Source: Schmidtea polychroa (lineage: Eukaryota). Taken from it: a DNA stretch of 64,000 nt. Made by a program: the position numbers and the translations under genes. Each line of letters begins with the position of its first letter. Within the stretch, counting starts at the first letter, position 1. Shown in pieces: positions 20-64,000 of this stretch. Location of the stretch: NCBI GenBank assembly GCA_044892525.1, contig CM097885.1, positions 162,316,001-162,380,000 of the forward strand, written 5' to 3'. The notes under the pieces were generated by a model that saw only the letters and a list, made by a program, of their open reading frames with translations, was not told the origin of the DNA and ran no database searches.

Positions 20-267
20 TTGCGATATGTTGAATGTGAGTAGTACCTTTGTGAGCAATACCCATAGGGGGACAGAATATTTTGTCGGATAGACTAGGAG
101 TATATACACCCATGTTAAACAAGGTATGTGTATATAGAATGTGTGTGTAAAATTATCGCTCCTTATTGACAACTTCATGTAAAGGCAAACACAGAATATT
201 GCAAACATATAATAATTCTCTACCCTATAACTTAGTGTGTAAAAATTATTTTAGGTTTTTGACTAAT

Positions 268-338
<71 letters not shown>

Positions 339-468
339 TAATACTAAAAATAATAAAGTTTAATGGGTCGTGTAAAAAATAATTTAGGTTTTTCACTAAT
401 ATTTGCGTTAATAATAATAAAGTTTAATAGGTTGTGTATCTATGTGTAAAAAATATTTTAGGTTTTTC

Positions 469-526
<58 letters not shown>

Positions 527-636
527 TGAAATTGTATTTGAAAATAATTTGCGACATGTTGATTGTGAGCAGTACCTTTGTGACCATTACCCTTAGGGGG
601 ACAGAATATCTTGTCGGATAGACTAGGAGTATATAT
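20..636 (+). repeat. Two copies (20-106, 549-636) of an LTR-like repeat separated by compound (AAT)n arrays
   Basis: TTGCGA.ATGTTGA.TGTGAG.AGTACCTTTGTGA...AGGGGGACAGAATAT.TTGTCGGATAGACTAGGAGTATATA occurs twice. Related copies lie at 11380-11450 (-), directly upstream of a gag relic, and at 27171-27215. A ~30-bp unit GTGTAAAAA..ATTTTAGGTTTTT recurs three times between (AAT)n tracts. Confidence 0.6.
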
Positions 637-889
637 ATTATATAATAATAATCATAATAATAATATTAATAATAATAATAATAATAATATTGATTAAAAC
701 TTTGAAAATAATACTTTGAACAATATTTGATGTAAAAGTTCCTGAAATAATCATGAAAATGTTGAAAATCGTGAAAATATTGAAAATGTAGAAAATTATG
801 AAAATATTGATAATTATTAAAAAATGCAAATGATGAAAATGTTGAAAATCATGAAATTGATGTAGAAATTAAGTTTTATGAATAATTGC

Positions 890-890
890 A

Positions 891-968
<78 letters not shown>
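890..968. repeat. (AAT)n microsatellite (others at 270-336 and 470-525)
   Basis: Pure trinucleotide runs, read directly. Confidence 0.95.
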
Positions 969-1189
969 TTTGAAAATAACATCTTCCACACGGGCGTTAA
1001 TATTTTAAAAGAAAATATTGAAAATTAAAAAATAATAATATGTAATCAACGATTTAAACAAATTATATTATTACGTATTCGATAATTAAAACAAAAAATT
1101 ATATAATCAATGATTTAAACAAATTATATAATCAACGATTTAAACAAAATTAAATTATTATGTAATCGATAATTAAAACAAAATTATTA

Positions 1190-19034: not shown

Positions 19035-19360
19035 TGAAAGTGATTAAATTGAAGAAGTATTTAATTTCCAGATTTAAATAGATTTAAATAATATAATTAA
19101 AGTAAATAATAAAATTATAAATTAAAATAATAAATTAAATATATTTAAGAATGATTGAAGATTAAAATATAAAATATTTATTGAATGCTTGTGTATGAAT
19201 ATTCCCTATTCAAATATTAACTCATGCTTACGAAAATATCCTCTAAGCTAAAAACAGTGATTGTTTTAATAATAGGTATTTTTGTGTTGTTTTTAAAAAT
19301 ATAGTTTTGTTTTGTTTTTAAAATATGGATGTGATTAATTTAAGAAACCAAACTTCTAAT

Positions 19361-20378
19361 ATGGCGACCACGATGGCCAATTTTATCAAAGCACCAGAAA
19401 ATTTCGAGATGGGAACCGATGTTGAACATTTCATCAAGGAAACCGAAAGGTTTTTCGAATTAATGTCGATAGCTGAGGACTTCAAAGGTAGATTTATCAA
19501 AGCTTTTTTATCAACAGATGCAATTAAGAAATAGGATTCAACTGATGAGAAACAAAATTATATGGATAGACTGAGAGAAACCTTCAAAAAACCAATGAAT
19601 CTGATGGAAGACTTAAGTGAAGCGCTAGATTATAGACAAGGAGATGATTCCGCTGATGATTTCTGCAAAAAAAATTGAGAAATTATCAAAACGAATTCTG
19701 AAACACGAGTTAAATGAAGAAGAACTTCAAAAATTTCTCATATTCAATGCAGTGGGAGACCAAGATTTGAAAAAAGATTTGAGATTAAATGAATATAAAT
19801 CTGTGAATGAAATGAAAAAGAGAATTAAAAATAACGAGAAAGTAATTAAAGAATTAAATCGAAACAGTGACTCGATGGCAATTGTGGGAACTGAAACGAG
19901 ATATGCGGATATGGTAAAAAAAGCTGTAAATATTCCAGCAAGACCAATATTACGCAGATATAACGATATTCCTAGAAGAAATACGTTCAGCGAGCCAAAA
20001 CAGAATCGAGAATATCAGAACAAACAATCGAATTTTAATAATCAAGAATTCCAAACAAACAATAGGCCAAAGTTCAGATGCTGGGCATGTCATGAAGAAG
20101 GCCATAGAAGAACAGAATGCCCGAATGTTAAATGTTATCATTGTCACAGAGCAGGTCATTTCAAACACCAGTGCTTCCAATTAAGAAAGAATTTCAGAGA
20201 TGTAAGAGAAAATGAACAAGAAAACATATGGGGAAAATTCCAAGGAAATGGCAGAAATTTCAGAAACCGACAATATCAGAAACCAGTTGCGGCAATGGAA
20301 GAAGAAGAAGAACATGAAAATCAATACCCAAATGGATATGCTCCACCACGAGAGGAGGTGATCGGAGCACTGCAGTAA
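19361..20378 (+). pseudogene. gag with two CCHC knuckles
   Basis: CWACHEEGHRRTEC and CYHCHRAGHFKHQC; TAG at 19532-34 and a +1 shift in the A-run near 19670. Confidence 0.9.
20327..20369 (+). promoter_or_regulatory. Candidate -1 ribosomal frameshift signal (gag-pol)
   Basis: Slippery C CCA AAT in the gag frame, then stem TGCTCC(ACC)...(GGT)gatcGGAGCA. The pol frame is -1 relative to gag and open from 20318. Confidence 0.6.
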
Positions 20379-20380
20379 GT

Positions 20381-23300
20381 ATGAGTTATTTGTTGAATGG
20401 GGAATTGTATGATGATTGTTTGTATGATGATTGTTTGCATGTATTAAATAATGAGAAATATGAATATATAAGTAATGATGATAATTGTAAATGCGTCTAC
20501 GATGCAGATATTTATAGTGATTGGTATAATAATGGATTGAGGTTAGATGATTTTGGAAATGTTGTAGAGCATGTTTGTAATATTAATAATATAAATTATA
20601 ATAGTAATATAATTAAATATAATAAATTAGATGGTAGACCACGTGTCACATTATTGATCAATGGGAACGAAGTATGCTGTTTATTAGATACAGGAGCAAA
20701 GATCAGTGTGATGGATGAAAGTGTATTAGAAAAGATAGGAAAGTTTTATTTAGAAAAATGTTATGTTAAATTGAGATGTGCAAATGAGTCACCGGTATCT
20801 ATAGTAGGAAAGGTAAATATTACAGTTCAAATAGTGGGAACGAAAGAGGCGAGAATAATTGAATTTATTGTGGCCAAAGAGATTTCACCAAAGGTAATTG
20901 GAGGAATAGACTTCTTGAGAAAATTCGACATAAGGATAGTTTATTAAATGACGATGTAACTATTGCTGGAATAAAAAACGTAAAAGAATTGAGTGAATCT
21001 AACCAATGTAAAGATGGTAATGTTAGAGAGCTATGCAGAAAATTTGAGTCAATTTTTATGAAACACAAATGGGATGTGGGTAAGACAAATTTAATAACGC
21101 ATGAAATTTTAACATCAGGAAGACCTATTGTGATAAATCCAAGGCGACAGCCAGCACATTTGATTGGAAAGATTGATGAAAATATAAAAGAAATGGAAAA
21201 ATTTGGAATCATTAAAGAATGTAACTCGCCATGAAACACTCCTTTAGTGTGTGTAAAGAAAAAAGATAAAAATGATGTACGAATTTGTCTGGACTTTAGA
21301 GCACTAAACAATGTCACAGAACGACCAATATTTCCAATCCCAAATACAAATGAATTATTAGATACGTTAGAAGGTGCAAAATATTTCAGCACAAGTGATT
21401 TAGGGAATTTGTACTACCAAGTGGAACTTGATTAAGAATCGAGACTGAAGACAGCATTTTCTACCAAAAACAGACAATATTGTTTTAACAGGATGCCATT
21501 TGGAATAGCAGCAGCTCCGGCAACCTTTCAAAAGTTAATGAACATGGTATTAGGTGAACTTAATTGGCAAATAGCGATAGTGCATTTGGACGATATTCTT
21601 ATATCTTCAAAAGAATTAAAAGAACACTACGAAAATATCGAAAAAGTTTTCAAGAAAATAGAACAAGCAGGACTAAAAATTAATCCATCAAAATGTCAAT
21701 TCTTGAAAAATGAAGAAAAGTTCCTCGCACATATAATCAGCCAAGATGGAGTAAAAACAGAAGAAGAAAAAATTAAAGTAGTCAAATTTGAAAGACTCAA
21801 GTGTGTTAAGAAATTAAGAAGCTTTTTAGGGTTAACCAGTTACTATAGAAAATTTATAAAGGATTATACAGAAGATTCAAACCATTTGGAAAAGTTGTGT
21901 GGAAGCAAAGAGAAGAAGTTGATTTGGACAGAAGAATGTGAAAGTGCATTTACGAAACTGAAAGATAAGTTGATTAATGCACCAATATTAAAGTTTCCTG
22001 ATTTTAAAAAAACTTTCATATTGGATACGGACGCTAGCTTCGATCGTATTGGCTCTGTTTTGGAGTAACAGATAGTTCTGGAAAGGAAAATGTTATTGCT
22101 TATCATTAACATGCTATGTCAAAACACGAGGTGGGTTATTACATAACAAGAAAAGAACTTTTAGCAATATATCATTTCACAAATCATTTTAAACATTACC
22201 TTTATGGGAAAAGATTTATACTACTGACGGATCATAAAGCCATAACATATATGATGAAGACTAAGAAACCTATCACTCCACAATTCCAGAAATGGATAAA
22301 TTATTTAAGTAGTTTGGAGTTTTCAATTTAGGAAAGGAGAAGAACATTGCAATGCAGATACATTGTCAAGAAGTGAATGTATGACGTGCGTTCAATACCA
22401 AACCATCCATCTTAATCCAAAAACAGGGAAACTCAAAACGAAACTTTTGGCAATAATGACAGAAAACCCAGAACAAGAATGGCAAAGGAATTCAGAAAAA
22501 ATCAGAAATCATAAACAACATAAAGCAAAATGAGGGTAACAAATTCATAATAAAGAATGGAGTAATATTGACAGAAAATAATAAAATATGGATTCCGGAT
22601 GATAAAAGAATTGAATTCATTAAAAGGTATCACAAGAAACTGTGCCATGCTGGACCAATTAAAATTGAGAAATATGTGTCAAATAATTTTTCAATGAGAC
22701 ACATGAAACGAACGATCCAAGACGTAGTTCATAGTTGTGAAAATTGTCAAAAGAGGAAAACTACAACAACACGAACTAGGGAGCAAATTTGCAAAATGCC
22801 GGAAACAGGTTTATTTGAAACAATATTTATAGATTTTTGTGGTCCACTAAAACAAAGTCAGTATAGAATGAGATATATCGTCGGAATTATCGATAGTTTT
22901 AGTAAATATGTGGCACTACACGCAGTGAAATCACAAGATAAAAAAACCGTGACACCAATTTTAAGAAATAATTGGATTTTAAAATTTGGTGCGTCGAGAT
23001 TTCTACATTGTGACAGGGGTAAAGCATTTGAGAGCAAAGCTATGGATAATTTAATGAAGGAGCACAATATTAAAATTATATTTTCAAGCCCGTACCATCA
23101 TTCAGCAAATGGCCTAATCGAAAGACAATTCAGAACAATTAGAGACGCCATTCATATCACTCTAAAAGATAAAGATCACAAGAATTGGGTAGAGTTATTA
23201 CAAGAAGTCGAGTTTATGTTAAATTCTACATTTCAGAAAACAATTAGACAAACTTCAAGTGAAAGAGTTTTTGGAAAAAGAATATATAAAGAATGGTCTA

Positions 23301-23575
23301 CAAATATGTCGGTTGAGAATATGAGTTTTAAAGAAATAACAGAAAGAAAATTCAAAGTAGGAGACATAGTGCTGGTAAAAAGAAATGATAACAAAGACGA
23401 AGATCGATATGTTGGACCTGCCGAAGTAATAAAACAAATACACGAGAGAAGTTATGAAGTACAATTTGAGAATGGAAAAAGGCTTATAAGAAACATAGAG
23501 TGGATAAAGCTTTTTAAAAAGGAGGATGTGAAAGTGATTAAATTGAAGAAGTATTTAATTTCCAGATTTAAATAG
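20381..23575 (+). pseudogene. pol: protease, RT, RNase H, integrase, disrupted
   Basis: LLDTGA, CLDFRALN, VHLDDIL, ILDTDAS, TDHKAI, zinc finger H..H..C..C, FIDFCGP, HCDRGKAF, NGLIER; several stops and frameshifts. Confidence 0.95.
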
Positions 23576-23857
23576 ATTTAAATAATATAATTAAAGTAAA
23601 TAATAAAATTATAAATTAAAATAATAAATTAAATATATTTAAGAATGATTGAAGCTTAAAATATAAAATATTTATTGAATGCTTGTGTATGAATATTCCC
23701 TATTCAAATATTAACTCATGCTTACGAAAATATCCTCTAAGCTAAAAACAATGATTGTTTTAATAATAGGTATTTTTGTGTTGTTTTTAAAAATATAGTT
23801 TTGTTTTGTTTTTAAAATATGGTTGTGATTAATTTAAGAAACCAAATTTTCTAATTT

Positions 23858-32076: not shown

Positions 32077-34426
32077 CAGGGGTGCCCACTAATTTTTCTA
32101 GGAGAGCTACATTCACATCCAAAATGTGTATGCGATCTACTTTTTTAATACTTACATAATATTTACCTACAATGCAATAAATTCATCACAATAAAACAAA
32201 TATATGTCAAAATATGGAAAATTAAACTATATAACTATTTATTATAAAAAATGTAACTTAGGAAATCAAATTTAATGAAAATTATTTTTATATAGAACTT
32301 TTCAATGTTGATGCTCTACATTGGGTTGAATCCACTAGATTTTTGTAGTTTGGGATATAAGTGCTAAGACAACTTCTTAGGCTGGATTCCAAATGGTCAT
32401 CTGTTAATGTTGCTCGGTACTTTGACTTTATAATTTTCATATGTGAAAATGCAGACTCACATAAATAAGTTGAACCAAAAAATGATACTAAATTTTCGAA
32501 GCATTTTTTCAAGTTTGAATATTTATCCTCTGATAGATATTTCCATACATTTGGTTCGGAAGATCTTGATTTAATGAAGATATCATTTTGAAGTGTGATT
32601 ATTTCCATTTCAAGTATAGGGATATCCATTTTAAACAAAGTTGAAATTGAATCTGCAACAATTTCTGGTTTTATTTTTGGATTAAATGAAAGGACATAAA
32701 TGCAGCCACAATTTCAAGTTTCTTGAAGTCTTGAAAACGTCTCTCGAACTCTAAAACCAAAATTTTGATCTGTTCCGCATATCTCGTAATATTAAAGTTG
32801 ACATTTTCAGATTCTTTTAATTGTGACAACATATTTGGAAAATAACTTAAATTTTTGTCTTCTATTTTGGTAATAAGTAAATGAAGCTTTTGTATAAATG
32901 CATTGATTGAACTTATCATATCGAATATCAATTTATCCTTACCTTGTAAGTCGAGATTTAATTCATTCAGAATTGCAGTAATATCTACTAAAAATGCCAA
33001 ATCCAAGAGCCAAACATCATCTTCCAATTGCTTGAACTCATCACCTCTTGCGGCAAGGAACAACTTAATCTCAGAAAGCAAATCTCTAAATCTTTGTAAG
33101 AATCTTCCTCTACTTAGCCACCTTACATCTGAATGCATCAGTAATTCAGCAGGACCTTCGCTATTACTTTCTTCAATTTGTAATTTGAAAAGTCGTCTCT
33201 GAAGACTTCTTGCACGAATCGAGTTAGCAATTTTGAATGTTATTTCCATAATATCTCTCATATTCAGAATTTTAGCACACAAGGCTTGTTGATGAATAAT
33301 ACAGTGGTAGGAAAGAAAATCTGGGAATTCACAATCATTCCTACAACATGCTATAAATCCGTTGTGATGCCCTGTCATAGCTGGTGCGCCATCTGTTGTT
33401 ATTGATACAAGCTTACAAATTTGGAGCTGAATGATGTTGGCATAAGCTTTAAAATTCTGAAATATATCCTCACCTCGAGTTTTACTTTTGAGTGGTATAA
33501 TTGTTAATAATTCTTCCTTCGTAGAAAAATCTTTAAAGACCATTCGAATAAAAATTATAAGCTGCGAAATATCAGCCGCATCAGTTGATTCGTCTGCTTG
33601 CAATGAAAATGCGGTACAATTTCCTATGTCTAACATTAACTGATTTTTTAAATTGGTACTTATTTCTTGGACTCTCCGTGTAACTGTATTACGGGACAAT
33701 TGCATATCAGTAATAGCAGAAATTATATCTGATTTATTTTTAAAATCACAAAATAATGATTCTGCCGCTTCTAAAAATGCTTCTTTTACAATTACTCCAT
33801 CACTAAAAGATTTCTTATTTTTTGCCAGAATGTAGCTTACTCGGAAAGATGCAGCTGTAGCTGACTTTGATTTGGATGTTAGCTTCGTAAAAAATGACTG
33901 TTGAAAAGAAATGCATGTTTTCAGTTCCATGATTTTAGACTTGCGTAGTTCACTGTCAAGTGGATAATCAACTGCAAAATTCTTATGAATTGTCTTGAAA
34001 TGCCTTTCCAAATTCCCTCTTTTTGGTAATGAAATAGTAGCTTTACAAATTAAGCAACAACATTTACCTTTAATCATTACAAAAAAGTACTCCTTCTCCA
34101 TTTCTTCGCTATAATGATAAGTCTTGGCTTTTTTATTTAGCATTTTTTTATTTAGCATTTTTAAACAAAATTAATTTAACAAAATAGCTTAAGAAAATTT
34201 TTCACTTTGTTACACCAAAATTTTTTTATTTAGCATTTTTAAACAAAATTAATTTAACAAAAAAGCTTAAGAAAATTTTTCACTTTGTTACACAAAAATT
34301 TAAGCATAAAACAGAAATTTTATATAAAATCTAAATTTATATAAAAAATATTTTTTTTATCAAGATCTACTAAAAAATCCTTCGCGATCTACCGGTAGAT
34401 CGCGATCGACCTTATGGGCACCCCTG
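32077..34426 (-). mobile_element. Complete hAT element (Buster/SPIN, GTF2IRD2-like group)
   Basis: 12-bp perfect TIR CAGGGGTGCCCA; perfect 8-bp TSD CTATATAT; subterminal CGCGATCTACCGGTAGATCGCG palindrome; ~78-bp tandem duplication upstream of the ORF. Confidence 0.95.
32288..34158 (-). pseudogene. hAT transposase with one frameshift
   Basis: CCCLICK..RHFKTIH, FSLQADESTD, SITTDGAPAM, YHCIIHQQAL, VRWLSRG, FGSTYLCESAFS. A 1-nt loss near 32690 splits the 495-aa and 116-aa ORFs. Confidence 0.92.
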
Positions 34427-35215: not shown

Positions 35216-35345
35216 TGTTTCGACCAGTCAGAGAGGGATTGCCTCTGACTGGCAGTTCGTTGCATGCCTTTTTTCTATCGCGTCTGTGTGCGCGGTCTGG
35301 TTAGACCGATTCTTGTTGGTGTGCGCATACAGACGCGAGCAATGG
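35216..35345 (+). promoter_or_regulatory. Palindromic leader cassette, copy A
   Basis: 10-bp hairpin CCAGTCAGAG/CTCTGACTGG (35224-35252); 16-bp arms 35278-35293 / 35323-35338; inner CGGTCT/AGACCG hairpin. Closely matches 58515-58641 (-). The regulatory role is inference. Confidence 0.6.
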
Positions 35346-35507
35346 ATTGATTTTGTAAATAGGTAATTTATTACTATTGTAAATTTTTATGGATTGATTT
35401 TTGTAAATAGAAATTAGATTGGATTTTTGGAAATGTTGTTTTACCGGATGAATTGGAATTTTTTGGAAGACATGTTGAATTGTTTTTAAATTGGATTTGT
35501 TGAAAGA

Positions 35508-37142
35508 ATGGCGGTCGAAATGAATTTGCGATGTGATCTAGGTTGTGATCAGAAATTCTGTCTTACATCTTTTCAAAATATTAACTTTGTGAAAGGCGAT
35601 CTCATTTATACTGATTTCCAAGGAAAAGTTCCCGATAAATTAATTGTATCGATTGTCACGGAACTTTCACAGTTGTTGCCATCAATTTTCATGATTATCC
35701 ATGGGATCAGGTCTTCTAAATTCACAGATAAGTTCGTCAATAAAAACAACGATATTGTATTATGTATTCGTAAGAAAATAATATTGAATCATTCTATATC
35801 GGATTTTTCAAATCGATTTGTTTGCAAAACGAAAATCAGAAATTATTTAATTGAAGAATTATCCAACAGATTTTCTCAGTTGTCCGAATTAAAACATTTG
35901 GGTAAGTCGAAGTTTGAAATCGCGCGTGTGCTTCGACGGAAACTGCTACTGGATAAAATGGCATATGACGATAAAATGATTGAGACGAGTTCAGCTACGA
36001 GATTGTTTAATATTACTGAAGTTTATCGTGCACAAATGGAAGCAGCTCGATAAAAATCTGACGTTGGAATGGACATGATCCCTGATTGTCGATCGCAAGT
36101 TTATCGTTCACAAATGGAAGCAGCTCAACTCTATTCCCAATCGGCTGAGAGGCGACCATTAGGATGTTCAATGATGGCATTATCTGATGATATGGAACTG
36201 AACAAATTGTTATTATTCAAAAATACAATTATTATTCGTGATCTTGAATTTAAACCCGAACATGGTAGCAGAGCGTGGTTCCGGCTAGCCAGCCAGAACA
36301 AGGTATTATATAGATTTTTTATGCATGATCTTGTTATTATATTAGCAATAGGTTATATGTGTTATATTTTTATTATATTTGATATTGTTGAAACATTTCC
36401 CCTATGGCCTGCCCTCCCTAACCCTATTAGAGGTGGATTGGCGCGGGTATTTGTACAAACATTAACAGGGGGGACAATTACTCTCGAAGTTGAATCTAGT
36501 GACACGATAGAAAATGTAAAAGCGAAAATACAAGATAAAGAAGGTAGTCCACCTGACCAGCAACGATTAATTTGCGCGGGGAAACAATTAGAAGATGGGC
36601 GAACATTATTTGATTATAATATTCAAAAGGAGTCTATTTTGCGTTTAGTTTTGCGATTGAGTGGTGGAATGCAAATATTCGTGAAGACACTGACAGGAAA
36701 AACAATAACTTTGGAAATAGAATCAAGTGATACTATTGAGAAGGTAAAGGCTAAAATTTAAGAAAAAGAAGGGATACCCCCAGGGCGACAAAGACTTAAT
36801 TTTGCCGGGAAAGTATTAAAAGATGGCCTAACGTTATTAGATTATAACGTTAGGAAAGAAGCCACGGTACATCTGGTTTTGGGTCTGGCAGGGGGAAGTC
36901 CAGTATCAGATGCTGAGTTCGAGGCAGGTTACAAGAGACGAACTGGGTGGAAGATTTCGTTAGGGCGTCTGCGTAACCGGGCTTTAGGAGATGGATCGGA
37001 CCCTAGGGAAGAACAAAGGAGAATGGAGGCATACGAAGATAAATATGAGGAAGTGATAAACGAATTTGAGGAGCTGAGGAATAATTCTCGGGAGTTAGGG
37101 CGGGAGAAAGAAGCAACAGGTAACATCACACAGTTTAAATGA
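35508..37142 (+). pseudogene. Chimeric intronless frame: unknown-PSMA6 fragments-hydrophobic segment-ubiquitin-ubiquitin-tail
   Basis: ORFs at 35508, 36069 and 36879 are in the same frame, broken only by TAA at 36051-53 and 36759-61. Contains [45 protein letters not shown] (PSMA6-like). Ub1 36441-36668 is 64/76 identical and Ub2 36669-36896 is 58/76 identical to canonical ubiquitin. Confidence 0.8.
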
Positions 37143-39284
37143 CATCATTGTAATGTTACAACAAAAACTGGCTCGAAATTTTATTAATAATAAAATTTCA
37201 ATTTTTATAATGGTGGTTTATCAGAAAAAGAATTTCATTTATTTAGCCATTTTAGAAATGGCTTTCAAGTAAGTTTTAAAATTTTAAGTAATTTTTAAGA
37301 GTTGAATTTTGATTTTTTATAGTTTTATATAGAATTATTTCAATTTAGATATAATTTGAATTATAATTAATGAAAGTAAATGCCAAAAATATGTAATCTT
37401 CCAAAACATTTCGGGAAAATTCGCTAAATATGAACAAAGTAATTTTTCAGATTTTTGTAACTTAATTTTAACTTTAAAATAAATTTTACGGTGATTTTTA
37501 TGTCATTTCATTACCACTTAACGTTGATTCTTCATAAATTGATTTCAAAAAATTTTCTGTGATCATTTTATTTTTCAAAATTTTCTGAAAAAGTTATTAT
37601 AGAAACTTGTCACAGCGGCGCATTTCTATATATCGAAAGTTTGCATATAATTTTTAGTATATGTTGTGTTTGTGTGCATTTATTTAATTTTTCTACTATG
37701 TTTTTTGATTTCTATAATGTAAAGCGTATCTCATTATACTATCAATGAGAACATCAGCGAGAAATCAAAGTAAGTTTGTATGTTTGTATAATATAAGTTT
37801 TAGATTTTTTTTGTATAATAAATGTTTCTCAGCCGGTTCTGATGTATGGCGTGGAGCAGTGCAATATAAAGAATAAGTCTAGGTGAAGGCTTTCCACCTT
37901 TCCGGTTTCAATATACTGAGAGGCGTCTAACAGACGTGGATAACGCAAGGTCAAAATAATATTAAATTAGTCGAGAAAAAGAGCCTGCAAGTGTAAAATA
38001 CTCAGTCAAATTAGAAAAAAATCTACAAAATGGTTTTTTTTGTGAAATTCTAAGATACTTGTTTGCATTTATAACTCTTTTGTCTGACAATTATTATTTT
38101 AATTTTATTATTAATATTTAATTAAATATATAATTTTATAATCAAATATAATCCCTACAAAAGACCTTTATGAAATATATTTTGATTTATTACAGGTAAA
38201 ATTATAAGCAAAAATAATCATGACAAAAAGCCATTTATATTTTGATTTTTAAATGATATTCATAGAAATAAACAATTAATTTTAGTAAACGGAAGTGAAT
38301 GTCCCAGGTAAAAAAATATTTTCTTTGATTATTTTTATTTTTTAAGATAATTATTATTTAATTCATTTTGTTTATATATTCTGATTTTTCAAAAAAGTAG
38401 GGTAAACCACCACAAATCTATGTTTATAATCATATATATAATCATATATTTATGACAAAAATTTGAGGTTGTCCTTGAGAATTCATTGATCAATTTTTTT
38501 ATAATTTTCAATTATCATATAAAAGTATTAGTAAAAATTAATAAAAAAGAATTGCGAAAGAGAATATACTAGACATGTGAAATGTCAAAGTAAAACCTTT
38601 GTTAAAATCAGGTTATTGTGGAAATCCTCGTAAATTGAATTTTTTATAGTTCAATCATAAATAATTTTAAAAAATTAGTTAGTAATGTAATAATTTGTTC
38701 AAACGGATAGTATAAAACAAAGTTTCTAAAAAACAAAGTTAATTTTATTTTTACACTGTATTTTAAGATATGTAGAATTATAAAAAATTTTCATACATAT
38801 TTATATTTAATAATTTAATATTTTTGTCTATTGAGTTATTTTTAAAGGTTTAAAGAATTCTACTTAACTGAGGCCATTATGCAATAAAGTAGAAAGATAT
38901 TTGGCCTCTGTATCCTACCATCGCCCTAATTTAATTATGTAATTAATCTGGATTATGCAATTACGTAATACTTGATTAAAAATTATGTCAATTTGAAGCA
39001 TGTTAATGTGAAGATGGTTACGTTAATCGGAAGTGTTGAATATTTCGTGCAAGTGTCCTTTTATTAAGAAAATCTAACACAATAATATTATCGAAATTAT
39101 CACAATTACACTTTTGTTACACATTTTAACGAAACAATCTCCGTTTACACAACTTTAAATAACTTTTTTACTGTGCACACTTCAATTTAAGCCAGAATCT
39201 TTTCACAGGGATTAAATTTCCAACGAGAAATGCAAAACAATGCATTATAAATTTCGAAAACAGATAGTAAATAATTATAGTAAT

Positions 39285-47530: not shown

Positions 47531-49010
47531 TAGGGTTTGCAATCCGGATATCCGGATAGCGAACTATTCGGATTATTCGAACAATTTTGACTATACGATT
47601 ATCCGGAAACCATTTATTTAAAAAAATTATTTACAACTTTAATGTTTTGAAAACTGTAATCATTGAATCTGCAGTGTAAAGGTATTTTACTAATATTTAT
47701 TTAATGCTATATTAATTTAAAAAAATTTGTTTTAAAAACTTGTAGCCTTGTCAATAAAATCTGAAGTGTGCTATATTTTTAAAGTTTATGAGAGCAGAGG
47801 ATTCTTTTTAATAATTTATATACTTTGCATCTGTTTTAATAAATACAGTAAATTATAACTGTTAGTAAATTTATTTAAAAAAAAACATATTTTTAGTTTT
47901 TAACAGTACTGTAGCCATGTCAGAACGATCTGAAGTTTGGAATCATTTAAAAAAAAATGAAAAAAATAGAGATGTTGCTTTTTCTAAACATTGCAGTAAA
48001 GACATCGGATGTAAAGGATCATCAACGTCGCCACTTTTAAATCATTTAAAACTTCATAAAATTATCATAAATTCAGCTTCAACTTCAATCGATAAAATTC
48101 ATGAACCATCGACATCAAAAAAACTTAAAAGTGATTCCAGTAAGTTGTCTCGATGTGTGGCAGGGTTTTCAATGAATAACTTAGTGAAATCACGAGCCAT
48201 CAACGGATATGTCCGAACTAAAGGCTTTGTCATGTCCCTCTACTGTAACGAAAAGTATTTTAAACTTTTATGATATAATAAAAGAAGAAACTATTGGTGT
48301 TCTCAATGAATTTTTAAAAAATGAACATTAAATTTTCAATAACAGTAGACGAATGGACCGATAATTCAATGAATACATATCTTAATATTTCACTTCATGC
48401 CATTGTCGGCAATTTGATGAACAAATTTAAAATGTTTGTTTTAGGATTAGTTCATAAAAAAGGTACATGCAATGCTGATCAAACCAAACTTTATGTTTAA
48501 AATAAATTAAAAGAATTTCAAATTAATATAAAAAGAGACATAATATCTTCAACACGTGAGGGTACCGCAGTTATGGTAAAATATTGAAGAATCCTTGGTA
48601 TTACATCTCAACTTTGTTATAACCGCGGCCTTCATTTAGCAATAACCGATATATTGTATAAAAAGAAACCAACAACTTATTTTTGTGAAGAAAATGAAGA
48701 AATACCAGTCTGTGTTGAACAAGAAATAGAATATGGCGCTGTCGCAAACAGTAAATATATGACTATAAGCAGTTTTGAAGATGCCAACATAGACTTCGAA
48801 CAACAAGAAGGAGATCATTTTATAGATTTGACCAAAGAAGTTAACATCAGAAAAGTTATAAGAACCATAAAATCCTCTTTAGTCAAAAACAATATTTTAC
48901 AAGGATATGTTAAAGATAAAGAGTGTAAGTTGTTGCAGTTGATGTTGGATATAAAAATCCGTTGGAATTCCTTGATAACAAAGATAAAAACACTTGCTCA
49001 AGAATAATGA
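47531..49010 (+). mobile_element. 3'-truncated hAT element with BED-finger transposase relic
   Basis: 5' end TAGGGTTTGCAATCCGGATATCCGG; SEVWNHLKK..CSKDIGCKGSSTSPLLNHLKLH; LMLDIKIRWNSL. Confidence 0.75.
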
Positions 49011-51829
49011 GTACTTTGAACATTTTAAATCAAAATTTTAATATTTAAAAACAAAATTTTATTCGCATATTATTAAATCAACAAACTTATAATAAACAAA
49101 TATTTTGCCATAACAAAGAAAATATGTAATTTTTTGACATTTCTATCCCTATAATCTTTTATTAAATTTTAAAAAAATTCACTTGAAAAAGGCAGTGCCG
49201 AAAATTCGTGAGTATTAACAAACATCGATATATTACTGATTTATAGTCTTCAAGCTCTCTTTTTATTAAATGATTTATCTTAAATTTTTATTATATTAAT
49301 TATTTACTTAATTATTCAATAGTTTTAACAATTTTATTAAGAACCGGAAAATGATATAATTTAAATAAAAAAAATAGGTAAGCCATGTGTAGAAACATTT
49401 TTTTCCTTTATCTGAATTAAATATTTTATTTTGTTTAAATGCTATAAAATTCTGTTACATTATTACGTTATATTATTGTCAATTTAATGACTTCAGAATT
49501 GAAATAATTGGAATAATATAAAATACTGACAAATTATTGCAATAATAACTAAAAATAACTTAAATATTTTTATGAGAAATTCGCTTTCAGTAATTGAGAT
49601 ATTTCAATTATGATAATATATGAGTCTGGCGTTATGAAATATGTGAGATTCTGGCCATAAATTTGTCTGATAGCAGATGATAGACATAAATAATAAACAA
49701 AACTGGAATAAAAAAAAATAATAAAAAGGATAAACATAATTTTGTTGATTCAACGAAATAAAAATATTAATTATAATTTTTTTCTAGTGTAAATAAATTT
49801 CAATTTTAAACCAATGAAATTTCATGAAATTTCAATTTATATTAGACAACATAATCCTTTCATCCAATTATTCCTTTTATAAACCAAAATAAAATATTAC
49901 TTTTATTAATAAATGCAATGAAAAATATTTGTTATTTTATCCCATATTTTTTCCATTAATCAAATATTTTTTATATTTTAAATTTCGCAAATATATATCG
50001 ATTCATACGAAAATTTATTTTTACAACTTTATTTTTAAAATTGTATTGAAAAATTCACAAATTTCATATGTCAATTTTTTAATAAATAAATTATGCCACC
50101 GATTTTCAAACTGGGATTTTAGAGTCATATGAAGGGGGTTGCTAAATAAAAATAAGGAAAGGATTTTCTGAGAAAAAATAAATATTATATTTAATATTAC
50201 ATTTGTTTTAAAACTACAGCCCAAAATAATATTTTTTTCAAGTGTTAGGCGAGTTCGAATTTTATTTAAAAGTTTGTAAATGCGCGGCTCTAAATTAGAA
50301 ATAGTTAAAAGCAAGTTATTATCAAGCGATATGAATCCATTTTTATACTGAGTTTTCAATATTAGTTTACTGAAAGGCCCTTTATTTCATTTATTTTTTT
50401 TATTTTCCTTTATTCACTTCGACCGGAAAGCCAAAACTTACCTAAATCCTGCAATGCAAACTGTAGTTGTAGTATTTTATCAACCAATAGTTCGTTGAGC
50501 TAATTGTTGGTATTTTTTGTAACGTTTCTATTACAGCAAAGTTTTTAAGAATGGATGAAATATTAATTTTTAATTATTTTTGACGTATTAGAAATCGTAG
50601 AGCTATAAATTTAAGATTTTTTGAAAAAAAAAATTTTTTTCCAGAACCTCAATGAGTTATTTAAATGGTAAAATGACCTCAATTGAAATACTTTGCTTCT
50701 ACTGTTTTTCATTATTCTAAGTTTATAAGCTCTAAATATTTTTAAAACCACATAAAATATAGTTCAATCGTAATTTATTTAATTAATTATTTCAGTTAAT
50801 TTGTAAAAAAAAATTAAAAATAACTTGAAAAACTCCAAAAGCTTCAGTGAGTGATATGAAATGTGCGAGACCCTAGGTGTCCCATTGCTAATTGGTGAAA
50901 CACCGCCTAAATCAGAGTGATTTTACAAACACACCAATCTCAAACTGTTTCCTATCCACATTTCTGAAAAGTAGTATCACCCAAGTAATTTCTATTATCA
51001 TAATAATTACAAAGATGAGAAAAGTTGGTACAAAAACACTTCAAACGGGATCTCTAATCTAGCCAGGAACTTGTTGTCGGCAGTTTTACTGCAACCAAGT
51101 GACTTGTTGATTGCGATCTTTCAAAAATCTCAATAAATGTTTTGTTTTAAATTATTTTAAATAAACTATATGTAAAGTATGTATTTATCTTAGTAACTGC
51201 TAAAAGACTCTTATTGTAATTAACTAGAGTTACTAGACAGTTTCTTGTTTGCATCTCAATATAATTATTTTAAATTTGCTAAATATTTGGTAACTTTATT
51301 GTCTATATTCCTATAATTTTATCATGTGGCCCGCCAACAAAAAATTAATTTCCATGAGTCCCGTGCACTAAAAAGGTTTCTTAATCCTGATTGAGACCTT
51401 TCATATTTTTAATTGGATATGCCTTTCCCATGAAATGAATTACAATTTCCATGAATTTGAGCTAGTTCAAAAACGACAATTATAAAAACGAAAAAAAAAT
51501 TCAGCTTATTAGTTGCTCAATTGTTTTTATTTATCCAAATTTTTATCAATTCATTTAAACAAACAAAGATAATTTTTATCATTATTGATTTTTATTCATA
51601 TTATTTCAAAATAAAAATTTGTAATAATAATAAAGGTAAAATTCCGAAATAAAAAACTTCTAAATGAATAATTTATAAGTTAGAGTATTTCGATTGAAAA
51701 GCAATATAATAGAAATAATCATATAATTTATTTATTTTTATTTATTTTAAATTCTTTTTTAAAATCAACTATATTTTAAGCATCATCTATAAATTTTGTA
51801 GGTTGTAAAGGCAATCTATTTATTGCAAT

Positions 51830-52110
51830 CATTGTATAGAAATTACCGAAGGATAAATTGGAACTTTTCGAATTTATATTGAGAAAAAAAAACCTTAAAG
51901 ACATGGAAAATATGGACAAAGTTCCAATGAGCTTTGATATGCTAACTAAAAACACGATCGAATGTTAATAATACGATTCAAATGTAGACTTACAGTAGTA
52001 TTGTCCCTTACGGAGAATGGAACCAAGTTAACCCCGGGGGCTATATTTAAATTGAAAATGATTTTGAAAGAGAGATTCCCACCACGAAAAAGAGATTGAA
52101 TGAATAAATC
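51830..52110 (+). pseudogene. pogo-type transposase fragment
   Basis: NMDKVPMSFDM matches the pogo NMDE.PM.FDM motif. Confidence 0.55.
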
Positions 52111-53115
52111 TAAATTTATTTAATAGATGAATGAGATTTTAAAAAGTGGCTTGGATCTTTTTTACCATTTGTATTCGATCCTACTGCAGTTCATTTGATG
52201 GAAATGTAAAAATAATTTAAGATTCTTGCTAACTGTTTGCTGTAATTGCTGGATGTTTTGCAAAATCTTTATACCTCTTGGACATTTTAAGTTGATATTT
52301 TGAAAGGATGTGAGAAGTGAATTCAAAAATGGAAACGACAATTATTCTACATTTACAAAAAGGATAAGATCCTAAGACAATCATCTACAGTCGCATGTGA
52401 ATGAATCGGGTCATCATTTAGTTTTACTAAGACCAAGTGCATGAATTAAGGTTTTCGAAGGATGAAAATTGCGAATGGAATCAGAAGGGACGAGGAAAAC
52501 AACGCATACTAAGAATCAACAGTCAATAAGGATGAATATGCAAATAACGTCCTTCGTTCATTCTTTTTGTAATCTGAAACTTATTGTATGTGATATTCTT
52601 ATTTTTACTATTTGATGACAAAATCATTAATGACACTTCAACATGATCTAGGTGTGTTATGAAATTTTTAATTTTTATCATGTAATTTTGAGATGATTAT
52701 TGCGAAAATTTATATTTCACATAATTACGTAAAGAACCTTTTTTTAATTAACATTGTAAGCATATTGAAATTAACAATTATCAATTAAAAATTTCATATA
52801 CATACAACCTAGATACACACTCACCACAATTGTCCCAATACAAATATTAAAGGAGTCTCTATTGGGGCCTACAAATTTCCATATTACATAGACTAACATT
52901 ATTAGCATAACACACATTATCAGCTTAGTCTCAACGAAGTTACAATATAACTGGTGTCAGGAGCAAAAATATACAAAACACACTCGCGAAAAATTCTTTT
53001 TCAACCCCTATCGCTTTCGGAATACCTAATATAGAAGTATAAAGAATAGTGGCACTATAACAAAAAGTGAGTTCATACGCAATAACATCGGTTCTTTGGG
53101 ATTCCGTCTTCCAAA

Positions 53116-53420
53116 ATGTCACAAAGCTGTTCTTCGTTTGGTCATGAACTACTGTGCGACCTCAAATGTGATTTGAAGAATAAAATTGCAAATTTAAAAT
53201 CGGAAGAACGTAAGTTTAGCTTGAGCATAGATGAGTCGACAAGCGTTCGAAACCGACGTTACATGAACGTTCATATCTATTATCACGACGGAGAATCTGA
53301 CAACCTTGGGCGTGTGCGAATTCAGGGATCATGTCCCTTAGAAAAAGTATATGAGCTCTTAGATGCAAAGCTTTCAGACTTCAATTTGAACCTCCAGTCG
53401 GACATCGTCTCAAATTCGGG
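53116..53420 (+). pseudogene. hAT transposase fragment
   Basis: KFSLSIDESTSVRNRRYMNV...NLGRVRI...FNLNLQSDIV. Confidence 0.7.
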
Positions 53421-54600
53421 AAACTATCACCAGCGCATCAACAGTTATGCTACAATCACGACATACACTTGGCAGTTATGGAGATAATGTATCAAAAACG
53501 ACTACACGTAATCTAAGAGGTCTAGCGGTTTCATCTATATAATAAAATACATAAATAAAGTAGTGAGATGGTGAAAATAATAATGATTCATGAGCACATT
53601 GATCAGCAAATTCGATGAAGTAATAATCGAAAACAAAAAAATTAAACGTGAACTCACCGAAATGAAAGAAAAATTCCAAATGCAAAACTACAATTGTTCA
53701 CCAAACCGTTATAACAGACTCGGTCAGATTCACGAAACCGAAAAAACAAAGCCTCTTACAACAACACAGACAAAACTAAAGATGAGATTTGTTACTAACA
53801 CCAAAAGTTCGGGAACAAAGCATACAAATGCAACAACCCATGCAACTACAAAACACAGGAAAACTGATGAAGTCGCCTTTAATCGTACCGACATTTGGCG
53901 ACAAAAATAAAACGTGCAATCACAAACAATAATTTCCTGATTGACACAGGTTCAGTCATCTCCCTATTACCCCACCAAATGTTCAAAAAACACAAAACAA
54001 CAAATAACAAACTCACCGCAGCCAAAGGTACCAACATAAGTACATTCGGACAACATACTACGACGATAACAATCAACAACAAAGAGTACACCTGGTCGTT
54101 CACTATAGCCGAGGTACAACAACCAATAATCGGTGCTGATTTCTAATCACACTCTAACTTACTAGTAGACTGCAGAAATAAAGACTTAGTCGAAAACCCC
54201 ATCACAAAAACAAAAACAAAACTATCAACAACAAATGACTACCCACAAATTGAGATTGGAGTAATCCAAACAAACCCAACCAATAAAAACAAAGCAACCA
54301 TCACGGTCCCGAAATAACTCGATTAATAAAACATTTCAACAAACTGACCAAACCAGTAACACTCAAAAAGAATTCGGACAACCCAACCGAACACTCAATC
54401 ATAACATTGGCAACCCAGTACACTCTAAAGTTAGACAACTGGACCCACAAAAAACAGAAATCACTAAACCAATTTTCAAAGAATTACACGACAACAAAAT
54501 AGTAAGACATTCAAACTCAGAATGATCTTCCGCACTTAAGAAAACGAGTCTGGTAAAAAACCAATCGAGTTTTTTTCAAAAGTTTCAGATCACACTCAGA
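53420..54600 (+). pseudogene. Decayed Gypsy gag-protease-RT fragment
   Basis: FLIDTGSVISLLP...PIIGADF (aspartic protease), followed by an RT N-terminal relic. Confidence 0.75.
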
Positions 54601-57684: not shown

Positions 57685-58326
57685 TCAAATGACATTATCA
57701 ATATTTCTGAAATTAATAAATAATAATAATAATAATTGAATAAGTCCAAGAACAATTTTATTTTCCGCCTCTACAGGGCCGCGTGGATCAGTTTTGAATA
57801 ATAACATTTTGTCCAGTTCAATATCATAAGATAATGCCATCATTGAACATCCTAATGGTCGCCTCTCAGCCGATTGGGAATAGAGTTGATGGATATCCGC
57901 CATAGAAGAACATATTATATCACAAGTCATTTTATGTCCAATTTCAGAATTAAATCGAGCTGCTTCCATTTATGCACGATAAACTTGAGATCGACAATCA
58001 GGGATCATACCAATCATAACACCTCCAGTACTTTCAGTAATATTAAACAATCTCGTAGCTGAACTCGTCTCAATCATTTTATCGGGAACTTTTCCTTTTG
58101 CATATCTATCGATTTCATTAAGCCAATTTTTAACATTGTTAAACGAATCTTGATCGGTAACATCAACCACAACAATAATTCCATGAGCTCCTCTGGAATA
58201 ATACGAGGTTATAGTTCCAAATCTTGCTTGATATGCAGTATCCCATATTCGCAATGTCATTGTATCACAATTTTCAGCATAATAGTCATCTGCGGATTTG
58301 ACGAAATAGTCCCAATCTGGATTCAT
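57685..58326 (-). pseudogene. Chimeric intronless frame: internally deleted Rab1 fused to a PSMA6 fragment
   Basis: 58326-58099 [60 protein letters not shown] is Rab1-like. It continues in frame as [55 protein letters not shown] (PSMA6-like). Single TAA at 57970-72. Confidence 0.85.
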
Positions 58327-58514
58327 TTAATTATTTCCAACCTCCGGTTTCAAAACAAAAAGTTCCAGAATTCAATTTAAAAAACCTTCCAAATCTCGCA
58401 GTTTAAACAACTCCAAAAAATCAAATCTAATTTAATAATCTACAAAATTAATACCAAAAATCAATACCAATCAAAAACTACAATGCAAAACCAACTTACA
58501 ATCTCAATCGAATT

Positions 58515-58641
58515 TCCATTGCTCGCGTCTGTGTGCGCACACCAACAATATTCGGTCTAACCAGACCGCGCACACAGACGCGATATAAAAAAGCCAAACA
58601 ACTGCCAGTCAGAGGCAATCCCCCTCTGACTGGTCGAAACA
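58515..58641 (-). promoter_or_regulatory. Palindromic leader cassette, copy B
   Basis: Perfect 16-bp arms 58523-58538 / 58568-58583 and 11-bp hairpin 58605-58633; homologous to copy A. The regulatory role is inference. Confidence 0.6.
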
Positions 58642-58869
58642 ATAATAATAACAAATATTTTCTAAGTAGAAATTTTAATATTGTTGAATTTAAAAATACC
58701 TTTCATTTAATCGAAATTTATTCTGAATTTAAATTTAAGATGTTTGTTAGAGTTTGCGTTTTTAAAAAATATTATATATTAAAAAATATTGAAAATAAAT
58801 ATTAACAAAATAAAAATTATAAGAACTTTTTTTTCTTCCAATTTTTTCCATTGAATTTATTAAAAAGAT

Positions 58870-58934
58870 AGTTTGAAGACTATAAATCAGTATCAACAAA
58901 CATCGATATATTACTGATTTATAGTCTTCAAACT
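58870..58934. mobile_element. 65-bp palindromic mini-element (same family as 7735-7841)
   Basis: 23-bp perfect inverted repeat AGTTTGAAGACTATAAATCAGTA with a 19-nt spacer. Confidence 0.7.
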
Positions 58935-60867
58935 CTCTTTTTCATAAATAAAATAAAAATTATAAATAGTTCTTTAATTTTTTTTCAGATTTTAATATAT
59001 AAAAATATTCATTTTATTGCATGTTTTACATCTATTTTGATAAATAAACATATTAAGAAGAAAATATATTTTTTAAACATTAAAAATAAAATTTCATCAA
59101 AATATTTACTAATTCGAACATTGTACTTCATCACAGGGCGGAAGGAATTTGTCAGATTAATGGGTAAAAACACCGTCGTTTTTACAGTTTAGATATGTTA
59201 TTGTAGTATATTTGCATAGAGAAAATCAAATTATAAGAGGAAATTATTAATTTTTGAATACTAAGTACTAAAAATGATATTCTATCAAAATAAAATTTTG
59301 TTCATTCTTTCTATCACGCGACCCGTGGCTTATTCTTTGGTAGCCAAAAAAATTATTTTTTATAAAAATTTATTATTATTCAGAAATAGAAATAAAAGTA
59401 CATTTATAAAATAACTAAAACCATTTTCTTTTCGTGCTGCGTGCCCCTAAAAAATTATTTCAACTTCGTGACCCCTAAAATGTGCTTATACATGCAACAA
59501 TTTATTTAAATTTATTTAAATTTAAATTTAAATTTATTTATTCCGTGACTAAATTTATAAATAAAACAATTAATTACAACGGTATTAAATAAATAACAAG
59601 AGTCAATTCAGTTCTTGAAGTAATTATATAATTTTCGAATAATGTATTAATTTTACCCATACTTTTATAAAAAGTATTTAACGTATTCATATTAAGAACA
59701 CTTGCTTTAGAATCTAAAGTTTAGATAAACAGTATATTTTTTACAAAAATTAACATCTTTCATGAAAAAAATATTTCGGAGTTGCAAAAAAATTTCATAT
59801 TTCTTTACAAATATATAATCTATTATTAAAATAGATGTAAACAAATAATTGAGGGAATATTATTGTTTTAATGAAATGAAATTGAGTAATTAATGATATG
59901 ATGTAAATGTCTGATATATGTTTATAATAACAGGAAAATATACCAGCATATATTAGACAAAATTAATATTATAGTTTGTGTACAACAAATGAAATATTCC
60001 CTTTCAATTTCAGCCCAAAATATATATTGGATTGACGTTTTACTTATATTTGTTTTAAACGTTATTAATATAAAGTTTCTTTAATTGATTCCATCGTTCA
60101 TTTAGTATAAATTATTATTCCTATTTTTCTTTCTGTCTCATTTTCCATCTCAGCTTTCTCTCTATTAATTTAATAATTAATCTGATTTTACATATTGTTT
60201 TTTACTTTTCATATTTTTATCGCATTTTTCATATAAATAATTTTTAATATACCATTTCAGATCAGTTATATTTATTCAATAGTTTATTTTCTGTGCAACA
60301 ATATTTCAAACATATTTCTGACTTTATTCCATTCTAGGTCACATTTTCAGGTTCTGTTTCCATAAGCTCTTTTTCTAATTTTATTTTTATTTATAGATCA
60401 AGCCTATGGATCATTATAAATAAAAAGTTAATTAATTGAATTTCGAAAATAAAAAAACAATACATTTTAATTAAGGATCAAAGCAGGTCACCACTGATAA
60501 AACAAAGTTACCATTCTCAACATTGTCAACTCCATGCTTCACTTTAAGCGAAGACAAAGTTGAATGTTGAAAGTTGAAAATGACAAAGTTATCGTAGAAA
60601 GGACATCCAGAATGACATGTGCAAATGTCAAGTCTTTACTATTAACCCTTTGGAACGAAACTTCACTGTAACTTATTGTAACAGATAGATAAACATATAG
60701 GTCGTAATAAATATACATTTCATATCATAAATATTCAACGATATAATGATTTGAATTATATATAAACTTTGCAAGGATTTCAATACGTATGTCTAATCAT
60801 TTTGAATTAAAAAATTATTTTACAATTTAAATGTAATATAATATTTGTCAAATTTTTAACGTTTTAA

Positions 60868-61331: not shown

Positions 61332-61474
61332 NNNNNNNNNNNNNNNNNNNNNNNNNNNNNNNNNNNNNNNNNNNNNNNNNNNNNNNNNNNNNNNNNNNNN
61401 NNNNNNNNNNNNNNNNNNNNNNNNNNNNNNNNNNNNNNNNNNNNNNNNNNNNNNNNNNNNNNNNNNNNNNNNNN
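61332..61474. other. Assembly gap
   Basis: N run. Confidence 1.
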
Positions 61475-62378: not shown

Positions 62379-62653
62379 NNNNNNNNNNNNNNNNNNNNNN
62401 NNNNNNNNNNNNNNNNNNNNNNNNNNNNNNNNNNNNNNNNNNNNNNNNNNNNNNNNNNNNNNNNNNNNNNNNNNNNNNNNNNNNNNNNNNNNNNNNNNNN
62501 NNNNNNNNNNNNNNNNNNNNNNNNNNNNNNNNNNNNNNNNNNNNNNNNNNNNNNNNNNNNNNNNNNNNNNNNNNNNNNNNNNNNNNNNNNNNNNNNNNNN
62601 NNNNNNNNNNNNNNNNNNNNNNNNNNNNNNNNNNNNNNNNNNNNNNNNNNNNN
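62379..62653. other. Assembly gap
   Basis: N run. Confidence 1.
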
Positions 62654-62986
62654 TAAAAGTCTTTATAATGCATGTTGGTGTGTTCATCAATCGATGACTC
62701 ACCATTTATGAGAATGTTTATTTCATTTTTTCATTCTCAATTCAATTTTATTTATGGTTTGAGAAGTAAGTTTTTTAAATTTAAGTATATTTTAAGGCTT
62801 GAATTTTGATTTTATATAATTATGAGATCATTATTCAAGCTCTTAAATATTACTTGTAATCAGCATTTATAATATATTGATAATTAAATTTCAGGTGCTT
62901 TTTTAGGTATTTTATGATATGTTATGAATTTGGAATTATTTCAATAAAATGTAAATTATATATATTTTTAACTAAAAAGAAATAAA

Positions 62987-63819: not shown

Positions 63820-63942
63820 CGCGTCTGTGTGCGCACACAGACGCGAGCAATGTCATTTTTTGGGTTGAATTATTGGTATATCGCGTCTGTGTGCGCTTTT
63901 TGCTTTGTTGATTGGAATTGTGTGCGCACACAGACGCGAGCA
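63820..63942 (+). promoter_or_regulatory. Palindromic leader cassette, copy C (two units)
   Basis: Perfect 26-bp palindrome 63820-63845, then arms 63881-63896 / 63924-63939. Followed by a TTG-rich tract like those after copies A and B. The regulatory role is inference. Confidence 0.6.
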
Positions 63943-64000
63943 AGAGGTAGGACAATAATTGATTAGGTTTTTTGTGATTGTTGTAATTTTTAGATTTTTT

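Follow-up and report, generated by a model that had tools for sequence, protein, structure and literature searches.

In the 64-kb stretch of flatworm DNA that we analyzed (the window), the minus-strand reading frame at 57685..58326 (locus B) fuses fragments of Rab1 and of the proteasome alpha-1 subunit, PSMA6, and on balance we regard it as belonging, in inactivated form, to a small and lineage-specific family of mosaic, chimeric ORFs put together from intron-free (cDNA-derived) fragments of abundant housekeeping mRNAs. The other member, locus A, lies 22 kb away in inverted orientation; since these are the only two full copies known, the word “family” refers here to a small sample. According to this reading, B would carry its Rab1 and PSMA6 pieces, and A pieces of PSMA6 and polyubiquitin together with two further pieces, behind one and the same structured leader. 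The pieces would have been joined, and later reshuffled, at microhomologies of 2-4 nt, a pattern that would fit template switching by a reverse transcriptase, replication slippage or end joining. For some time only variants with one long open frame would have persisted, the amino acid sequences of the parents not being preserved, and this persistence would mean that the unit was translated or otherwise in need of an open frame. After the two copies split, both drifted neutrally; B gained a CAA-to-TAA nonsense mutation, and it ends inside PSMA6. Locus B is thus probably not the gene of a working decoy protein but rather a decaying chimeric gene copy.

The frame of locus B opens with an ATG at 58326 and runs to 57973 (118 amino acids) before closing with a TAA at 57972-57970; past this stop the same frame continues for 94 further codons (57969..57688) and ends with a TGA at 57687-57685. 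It therefore holds one stop in 213 codons, as compared to 11-26 in the five remaining frames; about 5% of equal-length random windows from the same 64 kb, most of them genes of transposable elements (TEs), match this low count. The first 76 residues of the product (58099..58326, minus strand, intron-free) are Rab1-like, with a Pfam Ras match (E 2.4e-17) and, in a PDB search, Rab1A at the top (E 1.7e-24) with Rab35 and Rab8 well behind. When aligned against three full-length Rab1 proteins, this segment keeps Rab1 residues 1-10, 28-36 and 54-110, and its Pfam Ras coverage extends over profile positions 46-107 of 162 only. Two in-frame gaps account for what is missing in between: one (58297/58296) removes the P-loop (G1, GxxxxGK(S/T); LLLIGDSGVGKSCLLLR, Rab1 residues 11-27) and the other (58273/58272) removes switch I with the G2 threonine (SYISTIGVDFKIRTIE plus one more residue, Rab1 residues 37-53). 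Further, the G3 motif (DxxGQ) reads DTAYQ, in the context WDTAYQ, and the G4 (NKxD) and G5 (SAK) motifs are absent along with the C-terminal prenylation cysteines, the Rab part stopping at ...EIDRYA, Rab1 residue 110. Residues that are invariant in Rab1 have changed as well, for example G to Y in DTAGQ and SSYYRG to SYYSRG.

The Rab1 part is fused in frame to PSMA6 at 58099/58098. From residue 77 onward (KGKVPDK...) the product matches PSMA6 residues 55-94 (57973..58098, minus strand; E 2e-9; 62% identity to mouse PSMA6), and downstream of the TAA (57970..57972) the same frame matches PSMA6 residues ~96-159 (57775..57969; E 3e-10), Pfam Proteasome coverage comprising profile positions 21-62 and 67-139 of 189. 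A complete alpha-subunit fold with the N-terminal alpha-specific helix is not present: the locus holds PSMA6 residues ~55-159 of ~246, interrupted by the TAA. No frameshift occurs within either module. At its 3′ end the GC content drops from ~0.36 to ~0.17, and the last ~25 codons (57774-57688) are AT-rich flank: the stretch at 57685..57774, which carries AATAAA and an (ATT)n run at ~57715-57740, is open by chance as far as the TGA.

Most of what the first-pass annotation had read from this locus agrees with these results. The alignment with the three Rab1 proteins confirmed that the G1 and switch I segments are absent and that G3 reads WDTAYQ, and the ORF at 58326..57973 showed the frame to be intact across both deletions and across the Rab1-PSMA6 junction. 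Its statement that the product could not be a GTPase is strengthened by the absence of G4 and G5; nor could the product serve as a proteasome subunit, given the extent of the PSMA6 part, about residues 55-159 of about 246. The match to PSMA6 reaches residue ~159, and the codons from 57774 to 57688 do not belong to it.

Both loci begin with a common leader of 131 nt, which starts with TGTTTCGACC in each and is 92% identical between them (58515..58641, minus strand, in B; 35216-35346 in A). Its predicted RNA fold has a z-score of -6.8 and two strong hairpins; in B these are hairpin 1 (58633-58605) and hairpin 2 (58582-58524), the latter with a GC-rich stem of 15 bp, and the leader also contains a T-run with TATAT (minus strand, as are both hairpins). 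Between leader and ATG lies a divergent G/T-rich stretch (58327..58514, minus strand) that aligns poorly with locus A, in short matches only, and that may represent a 5′ UTR containing a short intron, judging by splice-like signals (GTAAGT ... TTTTGTAG). The 15-nt stem motif of hairpin 2 has eight matches in the window against none expected, and the four hairpins do not differ in their core, GTGTGCGCAYACAGACGCGAGCAA. The plus strand carries two additional copies of the motif at 63820..63943, one as a loop-less palindrome of 26 nt (63820-63845) and one as a hairpin with a different loop (63882-63938), with an (ATT)n run just ahead of them; a third mosaic locus may start here and continue past the end of the window. 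The copies may have spread by transposition, retroposition or local duplication; that three sites with the leader or its hairpin occur within 30 kb is as compatible with local duplication as with a mobile family. Known RNA families, tRNAs and SINE heads were considered as the identity of the leader and set aside, as it matched no Rfam family and no tRNA.

Locus A (35216..37150, plus strand) consists of the leader followed by one frame (35490-37139) of 550 codons with two TAA stops, at 36051 and 36759. Its other frames hold 17-57 stops versus these two, and 0.03% of random windows of its length have so few in their best frame. Along the plus strand this frame comprises an N-terminal piece, GKVPDK, an open insert of 336 nt (112 codons; 35640-35969), rearranged PSMA6 blocks (35969-36222), a piece of 73 codons, ~2.3 ubiquitin repeats (the end of one and two more; 36441-36896) and a coiled-coil tail of 81 amino acids (36897-37139). 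The PSMA6 and ubiquitin modules contain no frameshift, and one of the TAA codons falls exactly on ubiquitin Gln31. The insert and the 73-codon piece are open within a context of ~33% GC, and the ubiquitin and tail part has a GC content of 0.41-0.49. No significant Pfam, PDB or hAT similarity was found for the insert, the 73-codon piece or the tail, the tail having just one sub-threshold match, to DUF7801. The insert is bounded by a 14-nt imperfect direct repeat (35633-35639 and 35969-35975; CGATAAAtTaATTG / CGATAAAATGATTG), which resembles either a duplicated target site or the footprint of a template switch. In GC profiles both loci stand out as compact units, of ~1.9 kb for A and ~0.9 kb for B, in a background of 15-25% GC.

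The GKVPDK block and three PSMA6 blocks are common to A and B, with identities of 94-100% in the latter: B 58084-58033 (52 nt) matches A at 100%, and B 57889-57792 shares 96% identity with A 36125-36222. Over 219 colinear coding bases there are eight differences, of which 1.5 are synonymous and 6.5 non-synonymous (pS 0.033, pN 0.037, pN/pS ~1.1). The two loci separated recently and, as pN/pS is about 1, they have been drifting neutrally since the split. The segment holding the TAA of B exists in two copies in A (36033-36035 and 36111-36113) and both read CAA, so that the stop in B, which the first-pass annotation had taken to be probably recent, is derived. B is colinear with PSMA6, and in comparison with B, locus A has undergone an insertion (336 nt), a deletion (48 nt), a duplication (78 nt) and a second deletion (69 nt), each a multiple of three and each with a microhomology of 2-4 nt. 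The captured modules themselves are older than the split, judging by the ubiquitin part: its repeats differ from each other with pS 0.81 and pN 0.19, as repeats originating in a genuine polyubiquitin gene should, and they carry 12 and 18 changes from canonical ubiquitin, equivalent to about 10% neutral divergence after capture. The changes at Rab1-invariant residues in the Rab1 part of B point the same way. The Rab1-PSMA6 junction is present in B only; the idea that A retains it was discarded, since 121 of 300 shuffles scored just as well when the N-terminal 100 nt of A were compared with the Rab1 part of B.

Both sets of stops raise the matter of the genetic code. TAA is the codon at each of the three internal stops, twice at a position occupied by Gln in the paralogue or in canonical ubiquitin, while TGA closes both ORFs, which hints at an alternative code with TAA = Gln. 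This candidate was nevertheless rejected: TE ORFs of 495, 335 and 244 codons in the window are open under the standard code, and the pol of the LTR element described below has a TGA at a conserved Trp in addition to TAA stops.

We infer that the pieces were captured as cDNA. Using a fish Rab1 gene (L001) and canonical sequences as proxies for the host's own, on which both the cDNA origin and the age of the modules rest, the coding exons of Rab1 cover residues 1-5, 6-29, 30-61, 62-93, 94-139 and the remainder. The Rab1 stretch of B is continuous over four of these intron positions (after codons 5, 29, 61 and 93), which argues for a cDNA origin, and the Rab1 and PSMA6 parts are, by the same proxy, intron-free copies of different transcripts fused in the same orientation. 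The first-pass annotation had raised exon skipping as a possible source of the deletions; this is not supported, because both deletions (residues 11-27 and 37-53) and the fusion point (after residue 110) fall inside fish Rab1 exons. Reverse transcriptase activity is indicated in this genome by a Ty3/gypsy-type LTR element on the plus strand at 19035-23828, whose LTRs (300 bp) share 99% identity and which has gag, protease, RT/RNase H and integrase domains, and we count it in favor of the cDNA-derived reading. Given these near-identical LTRs and a pol that is nonetheless broken by TGA and TAA codons and by changes of frame, the element was apparently mobilized recently in trans as a defective copy.

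The window as a whole has about 25% GC and is rich in TEs. Remnants of a hAT transposase occupy the minus strand at 32288-34158, with an ORF of 495 amino acids that has weak, sub-threshold DUF4371 and zinc-finger matches and a separate hAT dimerization piece (Dimer_Tnp_hAT, 21.2 bits against a cut-off of 21.4). A degenerate element at 47917-53487 (plus strand) appears BED/hAT-like by eye and has no Pfam match. Immediately upstream of locus B there is a MITE-like palindromic repeat (58809-58985; arms of 48 nt, 88% complementary), of which the window holds partial copies at 49211-49271 and 14709-14766. A full-length match to the mir-753 miRNA precursor family, which was described from the planarian Schmidtea, is found on the plus strand at 62788-62849 (75 bits, gathering score 62, E 1e-15), adjoining an N run; taken with the base composition, it suggests that the DNA comes from a planarian or a near relative, and no part of the window has a human appearance. 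The start of the window (226-1000 and 1193-1900) holds long (AAT)n microsatellites and a tandem array with a repeat of ~33-48 nt.

Was the reading frame ever under selection? The four rearrangements in A are all multiples of three, so it probably was at an earlier time, and we consider that the family was probably under selection for its frame during part of its history, the functions of the parental proteins not being maintained. Four of four in-frame rearrangements would be expected by chance in about 1/81 of cases and an open insert of 112 codons in about 2e-4, as estimated from its base composition; in addition, the Rab1, PSMA6 and ubiquitin modules, ~1 kb in all, are ~10% diverged from the sequences they came from and show no frameshift. 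In the ubiquitin part, a neutral simulation that reproduced the 29 ubiquitin replacements gave 2.9 expected stops against the one seen, a depletion that is not significant (P about 0.2). The first-pass annotation had held the clean in-frame loss of the Rab1 motifs to be unexpected under random decay. The pattern is real, and stronger once A is included, but two in-frame deletions such as those of B would arise by chance in about 1/9 of cases and, as B was picked for its intact frame, they count for little; it is chiefly locus A that supports the argument from the frame.

The alternative that survives best, and to which we give a minor but real chance, is that a one-off chimeric processed pseudogene was later duplicated locally, its in-frame features being due to chance and short time, with the ORF never under selection. 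Such a pseudogene would account well for a pN/pS of ~1 between A and B, for stop counts compatible with neutrality for the intact frame of B (given how B was ascertained) and for the lack of relatives elsewhere. None were found: an exhaustive HMMER search of 1.84 billion representatives returned 16,473 Rab-only matches and zero Rab1-PSMA6 chimeras, word-index searches gave Rab1 only for the 118 amino acids of B and no match for its 94-amino-acid piece or for the ORF of A, exact look-ups of 11 ORFs from the window gave no match, and neither did IMG/VR and the JGI metagenomes, whether searched by protein or by hairpin motif. What a pseudogene explains poorly is precisely the evidence for frame selection given above, i.e., the four of four A-specific rearrangements in multiples of three (~1/81), the 112 open codons of the 336-nt insert (~2e-4) and ~1 kb of modules ~10% diverged and free of frameshifts.

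The same evidence could be taken further: transcription units with a conserved hairpin leader might keep in-frame scraps of housekeeping cDNA open, with selection acting on translatability and not on the encoded sequence. We hold this to be rather unlikely. In one version, a unit that moves or duplicates would need to be translated in order to spread or to keep its RNA stable; in another version, a ubiquitin-fusion cassette would release a small C-terminal protein.

It is improbable, in our view, that the loci are cargo of a fragment-capturing DNA transposon (a Helitron, Helentron or Pack-type element), the hairpin leader being the element's 3′ end on the opposite strand. GC-rich hairpins do adjoin a sharp boundary of homology, microsatellites adjoin the units as they do in the Helentron-derived DINE-1 (PMC4067079), and Helitrons typically contain mosaics in which fragments of multiple genes are combined (PMC3288121, PMC4778049). 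The termini themselves, however, do not conform: the end reads ...CTGACTGGTCGAAACA and not CTRR, and no 5′ TC end, terminal inverted repeat (TIR) or 9-10 bp duplication was found. The Helitron signature of 5′-TC and 3′-CTRR with a hairpin ~10 nt before the end is absent at the boundary (TGTTTCGACC; on the opposite strand, ...GGTCGAAACA), and the terminal 16-mer occurs twice in the window, once per locus, with no inverted partner, so that TIRs are absent too. The fragments are also intron-free (by the fish proxy), whereas capture at the DNA level normally keeps introns. Direct repeats that could represent flanking LTRs are found around neither A nor B. In B there is no poly(A) or LINE 3′ tail, AATAAA being followed by (ATT)n, and in A AATAAA is present and an A-run absent. 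As for target-site duplications, the microsatellite sequence TTATTATTAT is present on both sides of B, in the flank at 57685..57774 and directly upstream of the leader, and A has a single candidate, a 7-mer situated 1.7 kb downstream; the TTATTATTAT flanks, together with the (ATT)n run before the hairpins at 63.8-63.9 kb, could reflect insertion into a microsatellite or coincidence.

Slightly less probable still is a functional decoy or dominant-negative protein, a nucleotide-free remnant of Rab1 on a proteasome fragment, that titrated partners of Rab1 or of the proteasome, or pathogen effectors, until the TAA silenced it in recent times. Effectors frequently target Rab1, ubiquitin and the proteasome, the frame was kept through both deletions and the fusion, and the TAA is derived, all of which would suit a decoy. 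The substitutions between A and B are, however, mostly non-synonymous, switch II and the retained Rab1 surface have changed at Rab1-invariant residues, the PSMA6 piece is a fragment that does not form a domain, B ends in flank DNA, the sister copy scrambles the same PSMA6 blocks, and no protein with this architecture exists among the 1.84 billion representatives. The current decoy function that the first-pass annotation had entertained is thus not supported, in view of the neutral drift between the copies, the nonsense codon, the fact that B stops within PSMA6 and the lack of any such protein in the search.

We think it very unlikely that the loci are fragments of an endogenized RNA-virus or retroelement polyprotein that had taken up host mRNA pieces in frame, with the leader as a viral 5′ UTR: this would account for host cDNA pieces being joined in frame, the ubiquitin ahead of a C-terminal protein, a structured 5′ end common to A and B to the base and the higher GC (0.41-0.49) of the ubiquitin and tail part, but neither A nor B contains or adjoins a viral hallmark protein, IMG/VR holds no match by protein or hairpin motif, and the tail has only its sub-threshold match to DUF7801. 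An assembly or chimeric-read artefact joining Rab1 and PSMA6 is hardly credible, even though the junction occurs in one locus only and N gaps exist elsewhere in the window (61332-61474 and 62379-62653), since the junction lies in continuous sequence far from these gaps, A independently has the same PSMA6 blocks behind the same leader, and both parts have diverged from the canonical genes and so are not fresh copies of real genes.

If the reading of A and B as cDNA-derived mosaics is correct, they exemplify how, in the genome of a flatworm, reverse transcription and microhomology joining turn abundant mRNAs into chimeras of several genes, and they suggest that such chimeras can last for a while as open frames without the function of their parents—in other words, as raw material for new genes. 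In annotation, the names Rab1, PSMA6 and ubiquitin should not be given to A and B as genes. Their hairpin leader offers a handle for finding the remaining members of the family and their source.

Among known systems, the chimeric retropseudogenes made by LINE-mediated template switching, such as U6-L1 and U6-mRNA in mammals and the tripartite WEIRD/Mg-SINE/MGL of Magnaporthe (PMC4476161, PMC2104539), share with A and B the direct fusion, in one orientation, of intron-free copies of different cellular transcripts, a short structured RNA-like 5′ part with a constant 5′ boundary, and abundant housekeeping RNAs as sources. They differ in that A and B lack a 3′ tail of poly(A) or LINE type as well as a clear target-site duplication, that the pieces of A and B are joined in frame and have been reshuffled repeatedly, and that the 5′ part matches no known small RNA. 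Helitron and Pack-MULE capture (PMC3288121, PMC4778049) likewise produces multi-gene fragment mosaics with hairpin-bearing ends in multiple related copies, but A and B do not have the defining termini and their fragments are intron-free. Probable past conservation of the frame and the hairpin leader make the two loci mildly unusual.

Cytopathic pestivirus polyproteins take up host ubiquitin and other mRNAs in frame. The resemblance lies in host coding fragments, ubiquitin included, being held in frame, with selection on the frame and not on the parental function; unlike these viruses, A and B have no viral genes and the locus lies in a TE-rich animal chromosome. In maize, Bs1 carries between its LTRs a chimeric ORF of several host gene pieces acquired via RNA, and the hominoid PIPSL (PIP5K1A-PSMD4) is a fused retrogene from a read-through transcript of two neighboring genes that kept whole domains. 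Like both of these, A and B have a chimeric ORF from several host gene pieces that would have passed through an RNA intermediate, and like PIPSL they involve a gene of the proteasome pathway; unlike them, they have no LTRs, contain sub-domain fragments only, and their ORFs are now broken. Retrotransposon-mediated exon shuffling and fused retrogenes have been reviewed in general terms (PMC5470649). Since the locus lacks at least one defining feature of each of these known systems, we describe it as behaving like a chimeric, retro-derived mosaic and assign it to no single family, the closest systems being LINE template-switch chimeras, exon shuffling by retroelements as in Bs1, and fused retrogenes such as PIPSL.
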